From: Prasinococcaceae sp. CCMP 1430
Taxonomy: Eukaryota; Plantae; Prasinodermophyta
DNA length: 51,864 nucleotides
Direction: 5' to 3'
NCBI GenBank assembly: GCA_013416795.1
Contig: RQSC01000028.1
Span: forward strand, 48,442-100,305
Below the pieces are notes generated by a model, which was given only the letters and a program-made list of their open reading frames with translations, was not told where the DNA came from and searched no databases. The translations under genes were made by a program, and so were the position numbers. Below are positions 40,363 through 51,864 of this stretch, piece by piece. Positions within the stretch are counted from its first letter, which is position 1. Each line of letters begins with the position of its first letter.

Positions 40363-43300
40363 TCACCAGTCATAAGCGGCGGGTGCGGCCCCCGACGGCC
40401 CCTGGGAGACCGTGGAGGTGGCCGGTGCGCCCCAGCTGGAGGGACCCCGGGCATCGTCGGCGCTACTGCCACCGTCCGAGTCGGAGCCGCTGTCGTCAAC
40501 GCGGGCGGCGCCGGGCAGGCGAACGAAAGTAACCTTGCGCGCGCTCTGCGGGTGTCGTATGAGGGCGAGGAGTGGGCAGTGGGAGTCAGAAACAAGCCAA
40601 GGACATGGCGCTCGCGGCGCGACCCGTCGGCGCGAGCGAGCGCGCAGCGCAGTCAATCCGCGCGTGACGCCGGCAGCTGCGGGGGCACGCACCTCGTCCG
40701 CAGTGTCATCGAAGTCCACGAGGATGCCATCGCCCTCGGCGAAGTCGCCGCGCAGGAGGGCCTGCGCGAGCGGCGTCTCGAGGCGCTGCTGGATGACGCG
40801 CTTCACGGGGCGAGCGCCGTAGCGGACGTCGTAGCCCACCTCGCTCAGATGATCCAGCGCCGCATCGGTGATGGTCATCGACATCTTCTTGGCCTCGATT
40901 CGCTTCGCCAGGCGATCGGCCTGCAGCTTGACGATGTCGCGCATCTGCTCGCGCTGCAGAGGCTCAAACACGACGAACTCGTCCACGCGGTTGATGAACT
41001 CGGGGCGGAAGAAACCCTGCGCGACGCCCATCACGCGCTCGCGCAGGAGCTCGTAGCGCGCCGCGCGGTCCGCTCCGTCGGGCATGCTCTCGATGGTGTC
41101 CATGATCTCCGTGCTACCGAGGTTGCTCGTCATGATGATGACCGTGTTGGCGAAGGACACGGTGCGTCCCTGCGAGTCGGTCACGCGCCCGTCGTCGAGG
41201 ATCTGCAACAGCACATTGAAGACGTCGGCGTGCGCCTTCTCCATCTCATCGAGTAGCACGACCGTGTACGGGCGGCGGCGCACGGCCTCGGTCAGCTGCC
41301 CGCCCTCCTCGTAGCCGACGTAACCCGGCGGGGCGCCCAGCAGGCGCGAGACGGCAAACTTCTCCATGTACTCCGACATGTCGATGCGCACCATCGCGTC
41401 CTCCGAGTCGAATAGGAAGGACGCCAGCGCCTTGCACAGCTCGGTCTTGCCAACGCCCGTGGGACCCATGAACATGAAGCTACCCAACGGCTTGTTGGGG
41501 TCTGCGAGCCCCGCGCGCGAGCGCTGCACGGCCTCGGTGACGGCAGTCACCGCCGCGGGCTGGCCGACCACGCGCGCGCCGAGCACGTCCTCCAGCAGCA
41601 GCAGGCGGTCGCGCTCGCTCTGCATGAGCTTGGTGACCGGAATGCCCGTCCAGCGAGCGATCACGTCGCCGATGTCTGTCTCGGTGACCTCGTCGGCGAT
41701 GCTCAGCCCGCCGGAGCCCTCGATGCCCTCAGCGGCAGCCTCGGCCTCCTCAAGCTGCTTCTGCAACGAGATGAGCTGGCCGTACTTGAGCTCGGCGGCC
41801 TTGCTCAGATCGTATTCGCGCTCCGCCTGCCCGATGGCAACGTTGACGCGGTCGATCTCCTCCTTGATGTCGGACACGCGCGAGACGGCGCCGCGCGTCT
41901 TCTCCCACTCCGCTGAGAGCGCCTCTTGCTGCGCGCGCAGCTCGCCCATCTCGCGGTCCAGACGGACGAGCCGGTCTTTGCTCGCTTGTTTCGTCTCGTT
42001 GCGAAGCGACAGGCGCTCCATCTCCATCTGCACGAGCTTGCGGTCGAGGTCGTCCAGGGCGCGCGGCTTGGAGGTGAGCTCCATCTTCAGCTTGGCGGCG
42101 GCCTCATCGACCACGTCGATGGCCTTGTCCGGCAGGAAACGCTCGGAGATGTAGCGGTCCGAAAGCGTGGCGGCCTCCACGAGTGCCGCGTCCGAGATGC
42201 GCACGCCGTGGTGCACCTCGTAGCGCTCGCGCAGGCCGCGAAGGATGCTGATGGTGCTCTCGACGGTCGGCTGGTCGACCAGGACCGTCTGGAAGCGCCG
42301 CTCGAGCGCCGGGTCCTTCTCGATGTACTTGCGATGCTCGTCCAGGGTGGTCGCGCCAATGCAGCGGAGCTCGCCGCGGGCTAGCATGGGCTTGAGCAGG
42401 TTGCTGGCATCGAGGCTCCCCTCGGACGCGCCCGCGCCCACCACGGTATGAATCTCGTCGATGAACAGCACGATGCCGCCCGCGGAGTCCTCGACCTCCT
42501 TCAGCACGCTCTTGAGCCTGTCCTCGAACTCGCCGCGGAATTTCGCGCCCGCGATGAGCGAGCCCATGTCGAGCGACATGATCTTGCGGTCCTGCAGCGC
42601 CTCCGGCACATCGCCCTGCACGATGCGCTGCGCGAGGCCCTCCGCGATCGCGGTCTTGCCCACTCCCGGCTCGCCGATGAGCACGGGGTTGTTCTTGGTG
42701 CGCCGCGAGAGCACCTGCACGCAGCGACGGATCTCCTCGTCACGGCCGACCACCGGGTCCAGCTTGCCCTCGGCGGCCGCCGCGGTGAGGTCGCGCGCGT
42801 AGCGCTCGAGTGCTTCGTACTTGCCCTCGGGGTTCTGGTCCTCAACCTTGCGCCCGCCGCGCACCTCGCGCGCGGCGGCCTCCATGTCGCCCTTGCTCAC
42901 GCCCAGGTACTGCATGAGCCCCGTGGCGAAGCGCGCGTCGTCGCACAGCGCGAGCGCAAAGTGCTCCACCGAGCAGAACGAGTCGCCGAGCGCCGTCTGC
43001 TCGTCGCGCGCGCGCCCCACCAGCGCCTCCATGTTGCGCCCGAGCATCTGCTCGGGGTCGCCCTCCACGCGCGGCTGCCGCGAGATGAACGAGTCGGTGT
43101 ACTGCATGGCGCTCGCCACGTCGGCGCCCGCCTGCCAGAGGTCGTCGCGCGTGCTTTAGGGTTAGATTCAGAGGGTTTGCGCGAGAGGGGGGTTTGCAGC
43201 GCGCCCCATGCCCGCCGCTGGGCCGGGCAGCGCGGGCGGGGAGGGGGGCGCGGCGCGGTCTGAGAGGGGATCGGAGAGCGCGGCGGGGGCGCCGATCGCA

Positions 43301-43764: not shown

Positions 43765-44441
43765 NNNNNNNNNNNNNNNNNNNNNNNNNNNNNNNNNNNN
43801 NNNNNNNNNNNNNNNNNNNNNNNNNNNNNNNNNNNNNNNNNNNNNNNNNNNNNNNNNNNNNNNNNNNNNNNNNNNNNNNNNNNNNNNNNNNNNNNNNNNN
43901 NNNNNNNNNNNNNNNNNNNNNNNNNNNNNNNNNNNNNNNNNNNNNNNNNNNNNNNNNNNNNNNNNNNNNNNNNNNNNNNNNNNNNNNNNNNNNNNNNNNN
44001 NNNNNNNNNNNNNNNNNNNNNNNNNNNNNNNNNNNNNNNNNNNNNNNNNNNNNNNNNNNNNNNNNNNNNNNNNNNNNNNNNNNNNNNNNNNNNNNNNNNN
44101 NNNNNNNNNNNNNNNNNNNNNNNNNNNNNNNNNNNNNNNNNNNNNNNNNNNNNNNNNNNNNNNNNNNNNNNNNNNNNNNNNNNNNNNNNNNNNNNNNNNN
44201 NNNNNNNNNNNNNNNNNNNNNNNNNNNNNNNNNNNNNNNNNNNNNNNNNNNNNNNNNNNNNNNNNNNNNNNNNNNNNNNNNNNNNNNNNNNNNNNNNNNN
44301 NNNNNNNNNNNNNNNNNNNNNNNNNNNNNNNNNNNNNNNNNNNNNNNNNNNNNNNNNNNNNNNNNNNNNNNNNNNNNNNNNNNNNNNNNNNNNNNNNNNN
44401 NNNNNNNNNNNNNNNNNNNNNNNNNNNNNNNNNNNNNNNNN

Positions 44442-45952
44442 TGGCGGACGGCGGCGAGGCCGGGGGCGGCGGCGCAGCGACGCGCGCGGCGGCGCAGGAG
44501 GCTGCCGAGCTGCGGCGTTCGCTGCAGAGGCAGCTGGCGGAGATTCAGAGGACCGAGGCCAAGCTGCGTGCCATCGAAGGGAGCGTCGATGACCACGATG
44601 GCACGGGCGACGCGGGCGACACAGGGGGCGACCGCCGACGCGCGCTAACGGCCCCGACGCTCCTCCTCATGGAGGACCGACAGCTGTGGCCCTACGGCCA
44701 CGTGGCGAGCTCGGCGGGCGACTACTTGCGCGCGCTCGAGGGTGTCGACAGCGCGTCCAGTACGGCCACGCCCCCCAGCGCCTTCGAGCTGGCGGCCAGA
44801 AACTTCGGGCTCGAGTTCGATGCGCTCATGAAATACATCAGAGGCGAAGAGGGAGGCGCGGGCGTGCCGTCGCAAGAGGCCGCTGAGGCTGGCGCCGCCG
44901 CCTCGGACGCTGCCTCCACCGCTACGGTGGCGTACGCCCGCATGCGCGAGCAACTGGCGTCGCTCACCCTGTCGAACGACGCCGTGTGGGAGCGCGAGAA
45001 CAGCCGCGAGCAGGTCCGCGCCCCGTGGGTGATCAAAGGTCCCTACCTCGTCCTGTGCTTGCTGCTGGACACGCTCTTCGACGGCCGGCCCATCGCGCGC
45101 TTCTGGTTCCTCGAGACAGTGGCACGGATGCCATATTTTTCCTACATCTCGTGCCTGCATTTGTACGAGAGTCTGGGGTGGTGGCGGCTGGGAATTCAGG
45201 TGAAGCGCGTCCACTTCGCTGAGGAGTTCAACGAGGCGCACCATCTGCTGACCATGGAGGCACTGGGCGGCGACGCGCGGTGGCGCGACCGATTCCTCGC
45301 GTACCACTCCGCGATTGTTTACTACTGGCTACTGGTGCTGGCATGGGTCGTGTCGCCCACGCTGGCCTACAACTTCAGCGAGCTCATCGAGGCGCATGCC
45401 GTAGACACCTACGAGCAGTTCTTGGAGGAGAACGAGGACACGCTGCGCGAGCTCCCCGCGCCGCCCATCTCGAAATACTACTGGGAAAACGAAACGTGCG
45501 TGCGGCAGCGCGCACGTGCGGGTGCGCGCGCACTGCGAGGCGCGCTCGCGCTTGCGCATGCGCACGGGGCAAAGCACACACACTGACGCACGCGAGCCCC
45601 CTGCACGCTCGCGCACAGCTTCATGTTCGACGAGTTCCAGACGGGTGCTCCCGTGGGCTCGCGCAGGCCGACCATTGACAACCTGCACGACGTGTTTTCA
45701 AACATTGCCCTCGACGAGGCCGCGCACGTTTCCACGATGGCGGACTGCCAGGACAGCGACTTCCTGGCGCGCTCCCCGAACTATGAGGCCATGGTCGCCG
45801 CCAGTGTGTTGACCGCATTGGCTGCGAATAGGTACCTGACCTCCATCGTTGAGGAGGCCGACGAGGAGGCGGGCGGCGTGGCGCTCGACGCCATCGGGAA
45901 TGCGCTCGCCAGGGCCGCTGCCGCCGCGGCGGAGCTGCTCCCCTTCGCGTAG
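44442..45952 (+). CDS. PTOX: Plastid terminal oxidase (AOX/PTOX family), 5' end in the gap; intron 45496-45618
   Basis: RFWFLETVARMPYFSY, HFAEEFNEAHHL, ELIEAHAVDTY, spliced FMFDEFQT, and NIALDEAAHV (di-iron ligands). Confidence 0.94.
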
Positions 45953-46328: not shown

Positions 46329-49300
46329 ATGAGCACGGCGTTGCCGGCGACGCGCGGCACCCCCGGCGCGGCGGGCGCTGACGAGCGCGAGGCGGTGACC
46401 GTATGCGCAGCCTTCGCGCGTATGGTCGCGGCAGCGCCGCGCGCCCCCGCGCTGCGCTGGGTGCGCGGCGCGCCGGGCGGAGCGTGCGAGGAGTGGGAGT
46501 ACGAGCATGTGGCAGCTGCTGCTGCGCGTGGCGCGTGCTGGCTCGCACGAGCTGTCGGCGCGTCGGGGGAGAGAGCGTGCGGGCGCCCGCCGCTCGTCGG
46601 CGTGGCTGTGCCTGAGGGCGCCGCACTGCCGCTCGTCATGATGTCCGTCTTGCTGGCGGGCTGTGCGCCGGTGCCCCTCGACGCGCGTGGGGACCCGCCG
46701 CCACGACTCGCCGCGATGCTGGCGCGTGCGGCGCCTGCTGCATGTGTTGCGGCGGACGCGTGGACGCGCAGGGCATTGCTCGACGCTTGCGCCTTGGTCG
46801 GCGCTGGACGGGACCCAAGCGCCGTGCACACCCAGCGCTGCGAGCCGGCAGTGGTCACTGCTGATGAGCTCTTCGCGTGCCCTCAGGGCGTGGCATGCCT
46901 CGACGATGAAGAGCCGTTCGCGTCAGAGGGAATGCCCGCTCTCACGCCGCGCGCCGCTGAGGCGCTGGCCGCGCGCGTCAACGCCAGAGCGCACGCGGGC
47001 CCGCAAGCTGGCTCCCTCGTGGCGTCTCGCGTGGCGTCGCTTGCTGCGACCAACGTCTTTCCGCAAGCGGTGTCTCACGTCTACTTCACGAGCGGCTCGA
47101 GCGGAGCGCCGAAGGCATGCGTGGGCACCCACGCGTGCCTGGCGCGTTACGCCGTCGGCAAAAATGCGACGTTCGGCCTCAGCGCGGTCGACTGCGCCTT
47201 CGTTGCCTCGGCCCACACCTTCGACCCCTCTCTCGGGGACATCGCGGCGGCGTTTGCGTGCGGGGCGAGTGTAGCGCTCGCGCCGCGCGCCCTCGTGCTC
47301 GGGGGGCAAGGCGCGCTGCTGAGCGCATTGCGCGAAGCGCGCGCCACCACGCTCCTGTGCACGCCAACGCTACTGCGCCTCCTGCCAGAGGGCACCGCTC
47401 GTGCGCTGAGCACAGAGCTGCCCGACCTCAGAGTGGTGGGCCTGGGCGGTGAATGCATGCCAAAGGCTCTTGCTGCTGAGTGGGCGGCAGCAGGAGAGAC
47501 AGCGAAGGACCTCACGCTACTCAATTGCTACGGCCTCACCGAGTGCACTGTCTACCAGGCGTGCGCAGTGGTCCGGGGCGCAGCGTTCGCGCGAGCGCTC
47601 GGTCCCGGCCTCCGCCGGTCGCACACGGAGCTGCGCGTTGTGAGCGGCGACGGGTCCGATATCGACTCGGGTCGCCTCGTTTGTGCGCAGGACGAGCACA
47701 GTGTGGTCGGCGATGGTGAGCTTGGGGAGGTCTGGTACGTGCGTCCCATCTCCCGCGCGCCGTCGTGCCTTTGACATACGCAGATCCCGCATCACTGACG
47801 CACATGCGCACACGCGTGACCTGCACGCACGCCTGAACTTTGGCCCTCTGTGCAGGATCGTGGGCGGGCTCGTCGGCGAGGGCTACCTCGACCTATCCGC
47901 CGAGACAGCTCTGCGTTTCTCTGTCGGTCCCGACGGCCGCCGTCGCTTTCGAACGGGGGATGTGGCCTGCAACTCACCTGGCTGCGGTTGGGCCCTCGTC
48001 GGCCGCAAAGACGCGCAGGTGAAAGTGCGCGGTAGGCGCGTAGAGCTCGGTGACGTGGAGAACGCGCTCCTCGGAAACGCAGCGATATGTCAGGGACGAC
48101 CGCACGACGGCGTGGAGAGCCACGGAGCCGCAGCCGCTCACTCAAATGCTGACGCCAGTACGGATGCCAACCCGCGCGCAAGACTGGTGGGTGAGCTCAT
48201 TTCTGCGGCGGTGTGCACGCTCTCCGAAGGCGTGCTCGTCGCGGTGGGCGTTCTGCGAGAGGGGTGCGGCGTGAGGCCTAGCATCGAGGAGGGCGCCGAG
48301 GGTAGCGAGAACGAGCATCGCGGCCCTGACGAGCTCGATCCCGATGGCGACGTCGAGCGACGCCGCGTCGCGGCTGAGACCCTGCGAAGGCTGTGCGCCG
48401 ACGTGTTGCCAGCGCACATGGTGCCAGCGCGCATCGAGTTTGTGCGATCGCATACGAGCATACCAACCACGCAGTCAGGGAAGGTCTCGCGCGGTGCCCT
48501 GTCAAAGCTCGTCGCGCAGGCATCTTCGGCCCAACCGAGCGCGCCCAGCGGTGGCTCATCGCGCCCGCGCGGGCGAATGGAGCGCCTCGTTGCGCGCGCC
48601 TTCGAAGCCGAGCTTGGGGTGCGCGCACGCGGGCGTCACGTGAGCCTCCTCGCTCTTGGCGGCGATTCTCTGGCAGCGCTGCGAGTGTGCCAGCGCCTCG
48701 AGCCGGAGCTTTGCGCGCTACAAGGTGAAGGGGCGCACATTGCAGCGTGTGCCCGCGACTCCGAAGAGGCTGAGGATCGGGTCGGCGCCCCTGTGAGCGA
48801 AGGCGGGGCTTTCGGGGAGCTGATGGGTGCGCTGGGGCCTGCCGAGCTGTTGCGGCGCCCAAGCGTGAGGGACTTCGCCCGCCATCTCACTGCACACTTC
48901 AAGCCTGCCAGGGACTGCAGCACCCAGGAAGGCGAAGGGGAACCGGCTGAGGAGTGTGCGAGCGGCAGCGACAGCGACCAAGGTGGTACGGAGGATGGTG
49001 GCGTGGAAGTGGCCGGCGTTGCCGATTTCGGCGAGTCGCGCGACCTTGAGCTGCTGTGCGAGGCATGCCTGGCTGGTTGCGCGTGGGCTGTCCGTGCCCT
49101 GTGCATCGCCGGCTTCGTGGGCGCACACGCACATGCCAAGACGCACCGGGATACTGCCGAAAGCGCACGTGCGGACCCGTTGGTCTGTGCTGCATCGCGC
49201 GGGCGAGTGCAGTGCGTGCGCGTGCTGATTGCTCTTGCTCCGACGCCGGGCGTTCGCACAGGCGTGCTGCACGCCGCTTCGCGCGGAGGCTGCATCGCGT

Positions 49301-49842
49301 GCGTCGACGCGCTCGTGGAGCATCTGGGCGCAAAGGCACTGGCAGCTACAGATAGGGACGGTGCGAGCTGCGTTTGCGTGGCCGCACGCGCCGGCCACGC
49401 GCGCGTCCTCAAGCGGCTGCTCGCACTGTGCGCCGAGGGTGACAAGGCTCTCGCGAGAGCTGAGAAGGCACGGGGTGCGCGCGTCGTGGATTGGCGTGAC
49501 CGGTGCGTGCACAGCTTGTGCGGCTGCGCTGGGCGCGCGAACGCGCGCGCCCATGCCTGACTCCGCACCGCCCCCCTGCTGACCCGAGCGCACAGGTGGG
49601 GGCGCACCGCGCTCATGTGGGCCGCGTGCAATGGCCATGGTGGCTGCGTGCATGCGCTACTGGACGTGTGCGCGAGCGAGTCACTCGTGGACGCCGCGGG
49701 CGAGAGCGCGGTCGCCATCGCCGAGAGGCGCGCACAGTGCGGGGCAAGCGCGGGGCGCGCCTCCGTGTGGGCGGCCATCGCCGCTGCGCTCGGCGGCGCG
49801 GGGACGACCAAACGAGGGCGCGAGATGCGCGCGCGCGCGTAG
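46329..49842 (+). CDS. Stand-alone NRPS-like protein: adenylation - carrier (PCP) - ankyrin repeats; exons 46329-47734, 47856-49502, 49596-49842 (1099 aa)
   Basis: YFTSGSSGAPK (A3), TFDPS (A4), NCYGLTE (A5), GEVWIVGGLVGEGY (A6), FRTGD (A7), GRKDAQVKVRGRRVELGDVE (A8), LPAHMVP (A9), SGKVSR (A10); LGGDSL with Ser at 48667-48669; ankyrin-like units including DRWGRTALMWAACNGH. Confidence 0.9.
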
Positions 49843-49889: not shown

Positions 49890-51864
49890 TCACTCGTCGT
49901 GCATGAAGGCACCTGCTGGGCCTCCCGCCGGGCCTCCCGCCGGGCCATCGGCCAGTGCCACCTGCTGCGCGCCCGTCTCGGGAGCCTCGCGAGCCTGCCT
50001 GGCGGCGTCCGACGGCTGCCGAAGCGGCGCGTGCAGGTCCCTCCGCGCCATCCCGTCCGCGGCCGCCCCGTCGGGCACCGCGTAGAAGTCAGTAATCTGC
50101 CGGAGCTGCGCGCCCTCGTTTCCGGACCACAGCACAGAGAAGGCTGGCTCAATGCCGAGGCGCGTCGCGCGCGTCTGTTCGTACGACACAAACTGGATGC
50201 GCAGCAGCGTGGGCTCCCACAGGGGCGGCAAAGCATTGACTTGTCCCAGTCCGAAGCGCCTGTGCGCGATCCGCCTCTCGCTCAGGTCGACGATGCGTAT
50301 GATGCGCTCGTCAAACGTCGCGCACGGCACCGTCTCGAACGCATCAATCTCCGCTGCGTCGCGCGGCGCTACCTCTGACGCGGCCGAGTTCCCCCCCTCG
50401 CCCGCGTCGAGGGGCACGAAGAAGGTGAGCCGCTGCGCGGGGACGTTCGGGTCGCCGACGAGCTTGACGCACTCCAGTCTGCGGCAGTTCGCGGCGCGCG
50501 CGCTCAGAGGCGTGCCGCGCGGGCCGCCGCCCGCAATGGCGTCGTCCTCCGCGTCCGCCACCACCGCGGCAGTGCCGTGTGGCATGGGCCCCTCGCACGC
50601 GCGGAGGCTCACGAGCTCCATTCCATGACACCCGTAGCAGGCGCGGTACGCGCCGCACAGCTCCCAGGCGTCGCCCGCGAGGGCGTCCCCGCTGTCGCCT
50701 CCGTCCGGGCGCGCGCGCGGGGTGTCCTGCGCGCAGCTCCGGACCGCCGCGTCTCGGACGAACGCCGGCGTCGGCGTCGCTGCGACGGGGATGAGGCACA
50801 GCTCAGACGACGGCGGGAGCGGGGAGGGCACCGCGCGCGCGCCCAGCGCGCCCGAGATGGCCACCCCGCCCGCCCGCAGGATGCCGACAAGCGCGGACAT
50901 GACGCCGGGGTTGCCCTGGCCCTGCTCCTCCCCCTCCCCGCTGGGGGCGGTATCGTCGCCTGCGCCGTCCACGTGAGACCTGCTGCGCGGCACGTGCGGG
51001 CCGCGAACGCGCAGCAGCGGCCCCGCATGCTCCCCGAGTAATTCGAGGCGCCGGACGTACTCGTCGGGCGTCATGGCGTCGGGCGGCGGCACCTGCGCGC
51101 GCAGGAGCGCGGCCGTGCGAACGCCGCCGGCGCCTTGCAAGCGCGTGGCGCGGGCCTTCTCGAAGCGCGTGCCCCACAGGACGAGGCTCTCGGAGCCGCT
51201 GCCGCCGCCGTTGCTGTTGGCGGCCGGGGGAGGGGCGTGGGCCGCGTGGCACAGCACGGTGTCGCTCTGCTGCGCCTCGAACTCGCGCTCGGTGGGCGTC
51301 CAGGCCACGCTCGCGACAATGGCGAGGCCGCTGCTGTGATCGTCGAGGGCGCCATCGCTGCCACGCGCGAGGCCGTGCGCGTGCGCGCGCCCCTCGGCGT
51401 CGACGGCCTCGAAGCGCAGCAGCAGCTGGGGCTCGAACGCCTCGGCGCTGCGCGACGTGTGCCACGCGCACTCCTCCACGAGCTCCGCGATCCTGTGGCC
51501 GGGCGCGCCGCGCGCGTACGCCAGCGCGAGCTGGTCGTGCGCGAGGCGCAGCCGACCCCCTTGCCGCCATCGCAGCAGCACCACCGCGGCGGTGGGCGGC
51601 GGCGCGAGCACGGCGCAGTACGCCGCGCCGTCGCTCGCGCCGGCCGGCGCCGGGACGACCTCCCACCACGCGCCCCGAGCGCCCTCGGGCGCACCGATGG
51701 CGTCGTCTGCGTCGCCTTCGTCGTGGTCGGCGTCGTTGGCTTCGCGGTAGGCGCCTCCGCACGCGTAGCCGAGGCTCCTCAGCGCGGCCGCGGCGTGCGC
51801 CTCGCTGGGCAGGCGCAGCGCGTCGCGCACGCGCGCGAGGTCCGCGACGGGCCCGTATCCGGCC
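49890..51864 (-). CDS. DUF3506 / Cyclin-D1-binding-domain protein (domain shared with EXECUTER1/2 and FBXO31), 5' truncated by the window edge
   Basis: GAYRACYGCHGMELVSL and LECVKLVGDPNVPAQRLTF match the G.Y...YG.HG.E and KL.GDPNVPA...F motifs. Confidence 0.7.
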   Translation of the reverse strand, partial: AGYGPVADLARVRDALRLPSEAHAAAALRSLGYACGGAYREANDADHDEGDADDAIGAPEGARGAWWEVVPAPAGASDGAAYCAVLAPPPTAAVVLLRWRQGGRLRLAHDQLALAYARGAPGHRIAELVEECAWHTSRSAEAFEPQLLLRFEAVDAEGRAHAHGLARGSDGALDDHSSGLAIVASVAWTPTEREFEAQQSDTVLCHAAHAPPPAANSNGGGSGSESLVLWGTRFEKARATRLQGAGGVRTAALLRAQVPPPDAMTPDEYVRRLELLGEHAGPLLRVRGPHVPRSRSHVDGAGDDTAPSGEGEEQGQGNPGVMSALVGILRAGGVAISGALGARAVPSPLPPSSELCLIPVAATPTPAFVRDAAVRSCAQDTPRARPDGGDSGDALAGDAWELCGAYRACYGCHGMELVSLRACEGPMPHGTAAVVADAEDDAIAGGGPRGTPLSARAANCRRLECVKLVGDPNVPAQRLTFFVPLDAGEGGNSAASEVAPRDAAEIDAFETVPCATFDERIIRIVDLSERRIAHRRFGLGQVNALPPLWEPTLLRIQFVSYEQTRATRLGIEPAFSVLWSGNEGAQLRQITDFYAVPDGAAADGMARRDLHAPLRQPSDAARQAREAPETGAQQVALADGPAGGPAGGPAGAFMHDE

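Follow-up and report, generated by a model that had tools for sequence, protein, structure and literature searches.

A widespread adenylation–carrier–ankyrin protein of single-celled eukaryotes and a possible off-loading role for its ankyrin repeats

To our knowledge, few stand-alone adenylation–carrier (A-T) enzymes are recognised in eukaryotes (Lys2, glycine betaine reductase, Ebony and AASDH), and those whose reaction is established make defined metabolites. Single-module eukaryotic A-T enzymes without a condensation domain use other domains for release, and AASDH (ACSF4-U26) has been proposed to act in post-translational modification (PMC10531068). A comparable solution is found in the homopolymer synthetases PosA and Pls, where release is performed by a non-canonical terminal domain; the pocket code of PosA is DMEHNGTVSK, with an essential Glu (PMC10522769). 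Ankyrin repeats have also been described next to thiotemplate enzymes: according to PMC6361889 and PMC8283056, the trans-acting single PKS and NRPS domains of dinoflagellates are often fused to ankyrins, which are read as scaffolds, although these are other domain fusions than the one described here, and in PMC10512218 Aspergillus AsaA is a separate ankyrin protein beside the NRPS-like AsaC. The passages concerned contain neither an adenylation–carrier–ankyrin (A-T-Ank) family nor a carrier-binding groove, and such proteins would have escaped surveys in which the condensation domain is what defines an NRPS (PMC4661987).

The A-T-Ank gene PRCOL_00006495 of Prasinoderma coloniale lies in a window of 51,864 nucleotides, the whole stretch of DNA that was analysed. 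Its spliced product of 1099 amino acids is read from one open frame across three exons, and every motif quoted in the initial annotation is found in it:

46329-47734, forward strand: exon 1, with the start codon and adenylation core motifs A3-A5
47735-47855, forward strand: intron 1, 121 nt, GT..AG, skipped in X1 and X2 contigs
47856-49502, forward strand: exon 2, with A6-A10, the carrier domain and ankyrin repeats 1-4
49503-49595, forward strand: intron 2, 93 nt, GT..AG, interrupting the D-R-W-G-R-T sequence with which ankyrin repeat 5 begins, skipped in an X1 contig
49596-49842, forward strand: exon 3, with ankyrin repeats 5-6, the Cys loop, the tail and the stop

The gene is spliced and expressed in P. 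coloniale. Both introns are real, as had been proposed, being spliced out in contigs of run X1, with intron 1 also spliced out in run X2 (both probable-RNA runs, labelled as RNA by guess only); contigs of run X5 contain the stretch unspliced, with neither intron skipped. A single X1 contig spans 47986-49816 and crosses intron 2, and therefore places the carrier, ankyrins and tail on one transcript, so that the ankyrin region is not a separate gene. The public model PRCOL_00006495-RA (P0159) holds all three exon translations exactly and agrees with the start codon at 46329, which lies outside the RNA contig coverage; an artefact or a fusion of two genes was rejected on the RNA contigs across the introns and this exact model. 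A hidden further exon was likewise rejected, and an additional catalytic exon is very unlikely, since only 47 bp separate the stop from that of the next ORF, on the opposite strand, and the homologs terminate just past the same tail motif. Diacronema lutheri KFE25_007697 (P0114), also of 1099 amino acids, is a relative and not the window gene, the equal length being coincidental.

Pfam, run exon by exon, returned AMP-binding (E 1e-32), PP-binding (20.9 bits, against a cut-off of 20.8) and Ank_2 (34 bits), with Ank also in exon 3, so the carrier and ankyrin assignments hold; none of the three exons matched a C, TE, NAD-binding or PQQ domain, which agrees with the earlier reading that condensation, thioesterase and reductase domains are missing. 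TIGR01733 is the best NCBIfam match of the A domain, with a score under its cut-off, and its best PDB matches are NRPS A domains; TIGR03443 reached 36.7 bits for exon 1, far under its cut-off of 1030. Long low-complexity inserts are present in the window gene. The features of the protein are as follows:

46419-48507, forward strand: adenylation domain, residues ~31-686 (Pfam AMP-binding, TIGR01733, PDB NRPS matches)
47082-47114, forward strand: A3 motif
from 47217, forward strand: A4 motif TFDPS
48472-48492, forward strand: catalytic Lys motif
48577-48900, forward strand: peptidyl carrier (T) domain, interrupted by an acidic insert (PP-binding, family alignment, model)
48667-48669, forward strand: Ser740, predicted phosphopantetheine attachment site (GGxS), 99% conserved in the family
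48811-48861, forward strand: family-specific carrier segment FGE-L-G-L-P-ELL-RP, its loop ordered only in the carrier–ankyrin model
49045-49812, forward strand: six ankyrin repeats, with conserved groove residues in repeats 4-6
49690-49812, forward strand: terminal repeat with the inserted loop E-R-R-A-x-C ... G-G-x-G-x-T-K, found only in the A-T-Ank family
49738-49740, forward strand: Cys1066, candidate acyl relay, found in 50 of the 62 representatives whose C-terminus is complete

The beta-alanyl-amine synthetases Ebony and Schistosoma Sm-NRPS are likewise single-module eukaryotic A-T enzymes without a canonical condensation domain, and PF00668 (HHxxxDG) is absent from the window exons and from the family members checked. 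Ebony ends in an acetyltransferase-like fold whereas A-T-Ank ends in a six-repeat ankyrin stack; searches with the C-terminal fold return ankyrins only, the AANAT-like condensation domain of the Ebony and Sm-NRPS type being absent, and the A4 motif F-D-P-S sets the family against both. AASDH shares F-D-P-S at A4 and, like A-T-Ank, follows A-T with a repeat-type domain of unknown action, but that domain is a PQQ-like beta-propeller, absent from A-T-Ank, whose C-terminus is ankyrin by Pfam and by fold; the link to AASDH and beta-alanine drawn in the initial annotation comes down to a five-letter motif. Lys2, glycine betaine reductase and CAR, which belong to primary metabolism, are stand-alone eukaryotic A-T enzymes as well, but are reductase-terminated, and the C-terminal NAD(P)H reductase domain of the Lys2, CAR and ATRR type is absent here. 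Among single-domain PDB entries, PosA matches the A core best, although its code differs from that of A-T-Ank (D-P-G-L-A-G-T-V-Y-K) and the membrane terminal domain of the Pls and PosA type is lacking.

A-T-Ank is a broad, apparently undescribed enzyme family of single-celled eukaryotes, and the suspicion that its architecture has no characterised example has stood, no description having been found in a literature search with most subscription journals outside its scope; databases annotate its members automatically. A search with exon 2 retrieved A-T-ankyrin proteins from Symbiodinium and a chytrid, a profile search ~90 more members from chytrids, dinoflagellates, Pavlovales, Tetraselmis, Cymbomonas and Balamuthia, and cluster look-ups extended the range to Chromera, Amoebophrya, Pycnococcus, Mesostigma, two choanoflagellates, Soliformovum and Gymnodinium. 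The lineages thus comprise chytrids, choanoflagellates, amoebozoans, green algae, dinoflagellates, Chromera and haptophytes; among the named matches there are no animals, land plants or Dikarya, in searches not designed to establish absence. A 47-position profile of the C-terminal tail matches 128 clusters (50% identity, many of them fragments) among 1.84 billion representatives, on which ground a one-off domain shuffle was rejected. Within the 104 new matches to this profile, 42 of the 43 proteins of at least 450 amino acids have the family carrier and ankyrins, 37 with the A domain as well, and the sole exception is a weak match. Pfam found no extra catalytic domain in the six longest tail-profile proteins checked, and no C, TE, reductase or PQQ domain is present in any A-T-Ank member checked. 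The divergent member P0148 has extra ankyrins, a weak NUDIX match and a SAP domain; compact members, such as SPPG_07049 of Spizellomyces punctatus, have about 850 amino acids, and PP-binding, borderline in the window gene, falls under threshold in many members.

In a FastTree phylogeny aligned on the family profile and midpoint-rooted, with no AASDH, Ebony or Lys2 rows, the family A domains stand apart from bacterial-type NRPS A domains (support 0.998). An ESM feature search with the A domain returned generic bacterial AMP-binding clusters only; the ESM Atlas holds one eukaryote-only cluster of the same overall shape, the model of which has all three domains arranged in the same way (TM 0.82 over residues 1-851). 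Non-exhaustive pattern scans of prokaryotic genomes and viral contigs, with one short pattern each, found no member, and a prokaryotic or viral origin was rejected, the scans giving generic ankyrin proteins only, one of them next to a separate ORF for an unrelated ligase. Two records that NCBI labels ‘bacterium’ fall in a cluster (L003, cluster of P0109) with eukaryotic genes, mS41 and DNAJC9, on its contig, and are probably mis-binned algal DNA. A third homolog search, aimed at the subfamily without the loop Cys, was swamped by multi-module bacterial NRPSs. At five loci from chytrids and metagenome contigs there is no shared neighbour or partner gene, and a gene cluster was rejected accordingly.

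The enzyme half looks active, to judge from its catalytic motifs: within the family, conservation reaches 95-100% at A3, A4, A5, A7, A8, A10 and the carrier Ser (99% for the Ser), and the Asp-Pro of the A4 motif (F-D-P-S) is invariant in 101 of 101 members. Read by motif anchors, the family pocket code is D-P-G-L-A-G-T-V-Y-K and that of the window gene D-P-G-L-G-G-C-V-Y-K; Asp, Pro and Gly301 are invariant, Tyr331 is present in 96% and position 239 is Gly in 86%. The retention of one code over so many lineages suggests one substrate, and since an aromatic residue at position 331 recalls glycine and beta-alanine activators, the substrate may be guessed to be a small or omega-amino acid. Ornithine or lysine, by analogy with PosA, is unlikely, as the acidic pocket residue, at code position 3 in the Pls and PosA enzymes, is missing.

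The ankyrin half was counted as about five repeats in the initial annotation, and has six in the AlphaFold model of the Spizellomyces homolog (pLDDT 89, pTM 0.86), the last being a capping repeat with a loop inserted between its helices that contains the Cys, an Arg and a G-G-S-G-x-T-K end. Its fold matches DARPins and ankyrins at Z about 20 (Z 20.3, rmsd 1.9 Å over 189 residues to 6ndz_B). Repeats 2-3 vary as ordinary ankyrins do; the groove of repeats 4-6 is near-fixed, with Q737 at 87%, R745 98%, W773 81%, R775 94%, W780 93%, N784 87%, E808 97%, R816 96% and R817 94% (Spizellomyces numbering, in which the carrier serine is Ser536 and the loop Cys is Cys820; in a set that is not dereplicated). 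The most frequent residue at positions 5 and 13 of generic ankyrin repeats reaches <=12%, in a control set biased for Trp10 and Asn14 by the way it was retrieved. By these comparisons the groove is under strong selection, as would be expected of a specific binding site. The window gene keeps the R, W, R, W, N, E, R, R and C residues, has lost the Gln and the two canonical His of repeats 4-5, and has neither partner of the covarying R787-D836 pair. The loop Cys, counted without selecting on Cys, is missing together with its loop in about 12 of the 62 representatives, and hence cannot be essential family-wide. The Cys-less proteins belong mostly to a subfamily in which a basic insert precedes the last repeat (P0101, P0107, P0108, P0127, P0135, P0136, P0157), some of which nest within the main clade by A domain, and mostly retain the Arg and Trp of the groove; both variants occur among Durusdinium-type and Symbiodinium records.

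Modelling predicts that the carrier docks in the groove of its own ankyrins, with the serine at the position of a groove peptide, in a geometry taken from alignment ranges only. The AlphaFold model of carrier plus ankyrins (pLDDT 89.7, pTM 0.89) gives a confident docked pose with the serine side in, and its structural alignments to the ankyrin-B entries 5Y4E and 4RLV start at model residue 43, which is the carrier serine and is matched there to the autoinhibitory peptides of these entries; such peptides line the inner groove of the ankyrins (PMC5779224). In the full-length Spizellomyces model, the A-T pose resembles solved thiolation states (rmsd 2.4-2.8 Å over about 500 residues), and the FGE loop, with a confidence of 82 (ordered) in the carrier–ankyrin model, has one of 52 and is not ordered. 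NRPS carriers present the same face to every domain they visit, so that a downstream domain would give just such a pair of predicted poses, one at the A domain and the other in the groove. From the model we infer that the serine lies over the middle repeats, where the 18-Å arm could reach repeats 5-6. Carrier–ankyrin covariation has a top z of 6.7 against <=4.1 in shuffled nulls, but implausible inter-domain pairs reach z 6-8; the pairs F575-V783, E531-G845 and L537-T770 fit the docking and exceed the shuffled nulls, with equal scores between other domains, and covariation therefore carries little weight here. In an AlphaFold model, any open groove may attract a domain that is covalently linked to it.

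We tentatively favour a reading of A-T-Ank as an A-T-X enzyme in which X is the ankyrin stack, serving as the downstream off-loading station of the carrier and possibly catalytic; the fixed architecture, the absence of a shared neighbouring partner gene, the conserved catalytic motifs, the near-fixed groove and the docked model lead to this proposal. Judging by the intact motifs, the A domain would adenylate a single specific small acid (probably an amino acid or an omega-amino acid) and attach it through a thioester to the Ser740 phosphopantetheine. The loaded carrier is then predicted by modelling to leave the A domain and dock, serine side in, along the inner groove of its own ankyrins, where the Arg/Trp/Gln/Asn/Glu patch of repeats 4-6 would hold the arm together with the nucleophile to which the acyl group passes, be it a small amine or the side chain of a protein; in the main subfamily, the loop Cys may carry a transient thioester on the way. 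The role that the atypical C-terminal domain has in Ebony would thereby fall to the ankyrin domain. That the ankyrin domain is itself the catalyst, a natural ankyrin-repeat acyltransferase acting onto a conserved acceptor through a Cys thioester in the main subfamily, is a bolder and somewhat unlikely claim, as we know of no natural ankyrin domain that is catalytic.

The same lack of precedent speaks for a rather doubtful alternative, close to that of the initial annotation, in which the groove recruits a separate partner, either a transferase or a protein substrate of aminoacylation, to accept the thioester in trans; the pose with the carrier in the groove would then be a resting state, displaced by the partner. 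Groove positions 3, 5, 10, 13 and 14, the usual protein-binding surface of ankyrins, are conserved in the family, ACBD6 offers the analogy of an acyl-CoA carrier with ankyrins that serves N-myristoyltransferase, and the scaffold reading of the ankyrin-fused dinoflagellate domains points the same way. The view of the ankyrins as a binding module in that annotation agrees well with the strong selection on the groove; recruitment as their only function is the less favoured reading, because the confident model fills the groove with the protein's own carrier, no co-located partner gene was seen at the five loci, and the Glu, Arg and Cys set in which the groove ends is enzyme-like and exceeds the usual needs of an adaptor. 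Off-loading and hand-off in trans can blend, for example if a protein acceptor is bound at the same groove. An unlikely further explanation makes the stack a latch or shield that clamps the loaded carrier and guards the thioester or senses the amino acid, with release by an unrelated general enzyme or beside the point: C-terminal ankyrins on glutaminase and asparaginase are regulatory, the groove Arg may do no more than bind the conserved acidic FGE loop of the carrier and the phosphate of its phosphopantetheine, and the grooves of ankyrin-B and ankyrin-G are closed by their own segments (PMC5779224), but the near-invariant Glu and Trp and a Cys loop beyond the serine site are left unexplained, as is an ATP-consuming enzyme kept in many lineages without a product. 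It is very improbable that the A domain alone makes the product, by direct attack on the adenylate or by CoA ligation, with the carrier and ankyrins accessory or decaying; the weak PP-binding scores and the low-complexity inserts of the window gene would fit such decay, whereas the 99% conserved carrier Ser, the match of the model to solved thiolation states and the splicing and expression of the gene argue against it.

A-T-Ank adds a further class to the stand-alone eukaryotic A-T enzymes, spread over opisthokonts, amoebozoans, green plants, alveolates and haptophytes, and this wide spread with a conserved pocket points to an old product. Chemistry in the groove, if true, would be without precedent in a fold that is taken for a binding module, and ankyrin catalysis would mean that microbial eukaryotes have an ancient aminoacylation pathway, or a protein modification, that has gone unrecognised; the compact members and the short list of residues make A-T-Ank directly testable.

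Directly upstream of the A-T-Ank gene, an AOX gene (alternative oxidase or plastid terminal oxidase, by Pfam AOX) occupies 44555-45952 on the forward strand, with an intron that ends near 45619 and RNA contigs much deeper than those of the A-T-Ank gene. An assembly gap of N lies at 43765-44441 and a ClpB/Hsp100 chaperone gene at 40363-43119 on the reverse strand. The convergent gene downstream, at 49890-51830 on the reverse strand, the stop codon of which lies at the 47-bp distance given above, encodes a Cyclin_D1_bind (DUF3506) domain.
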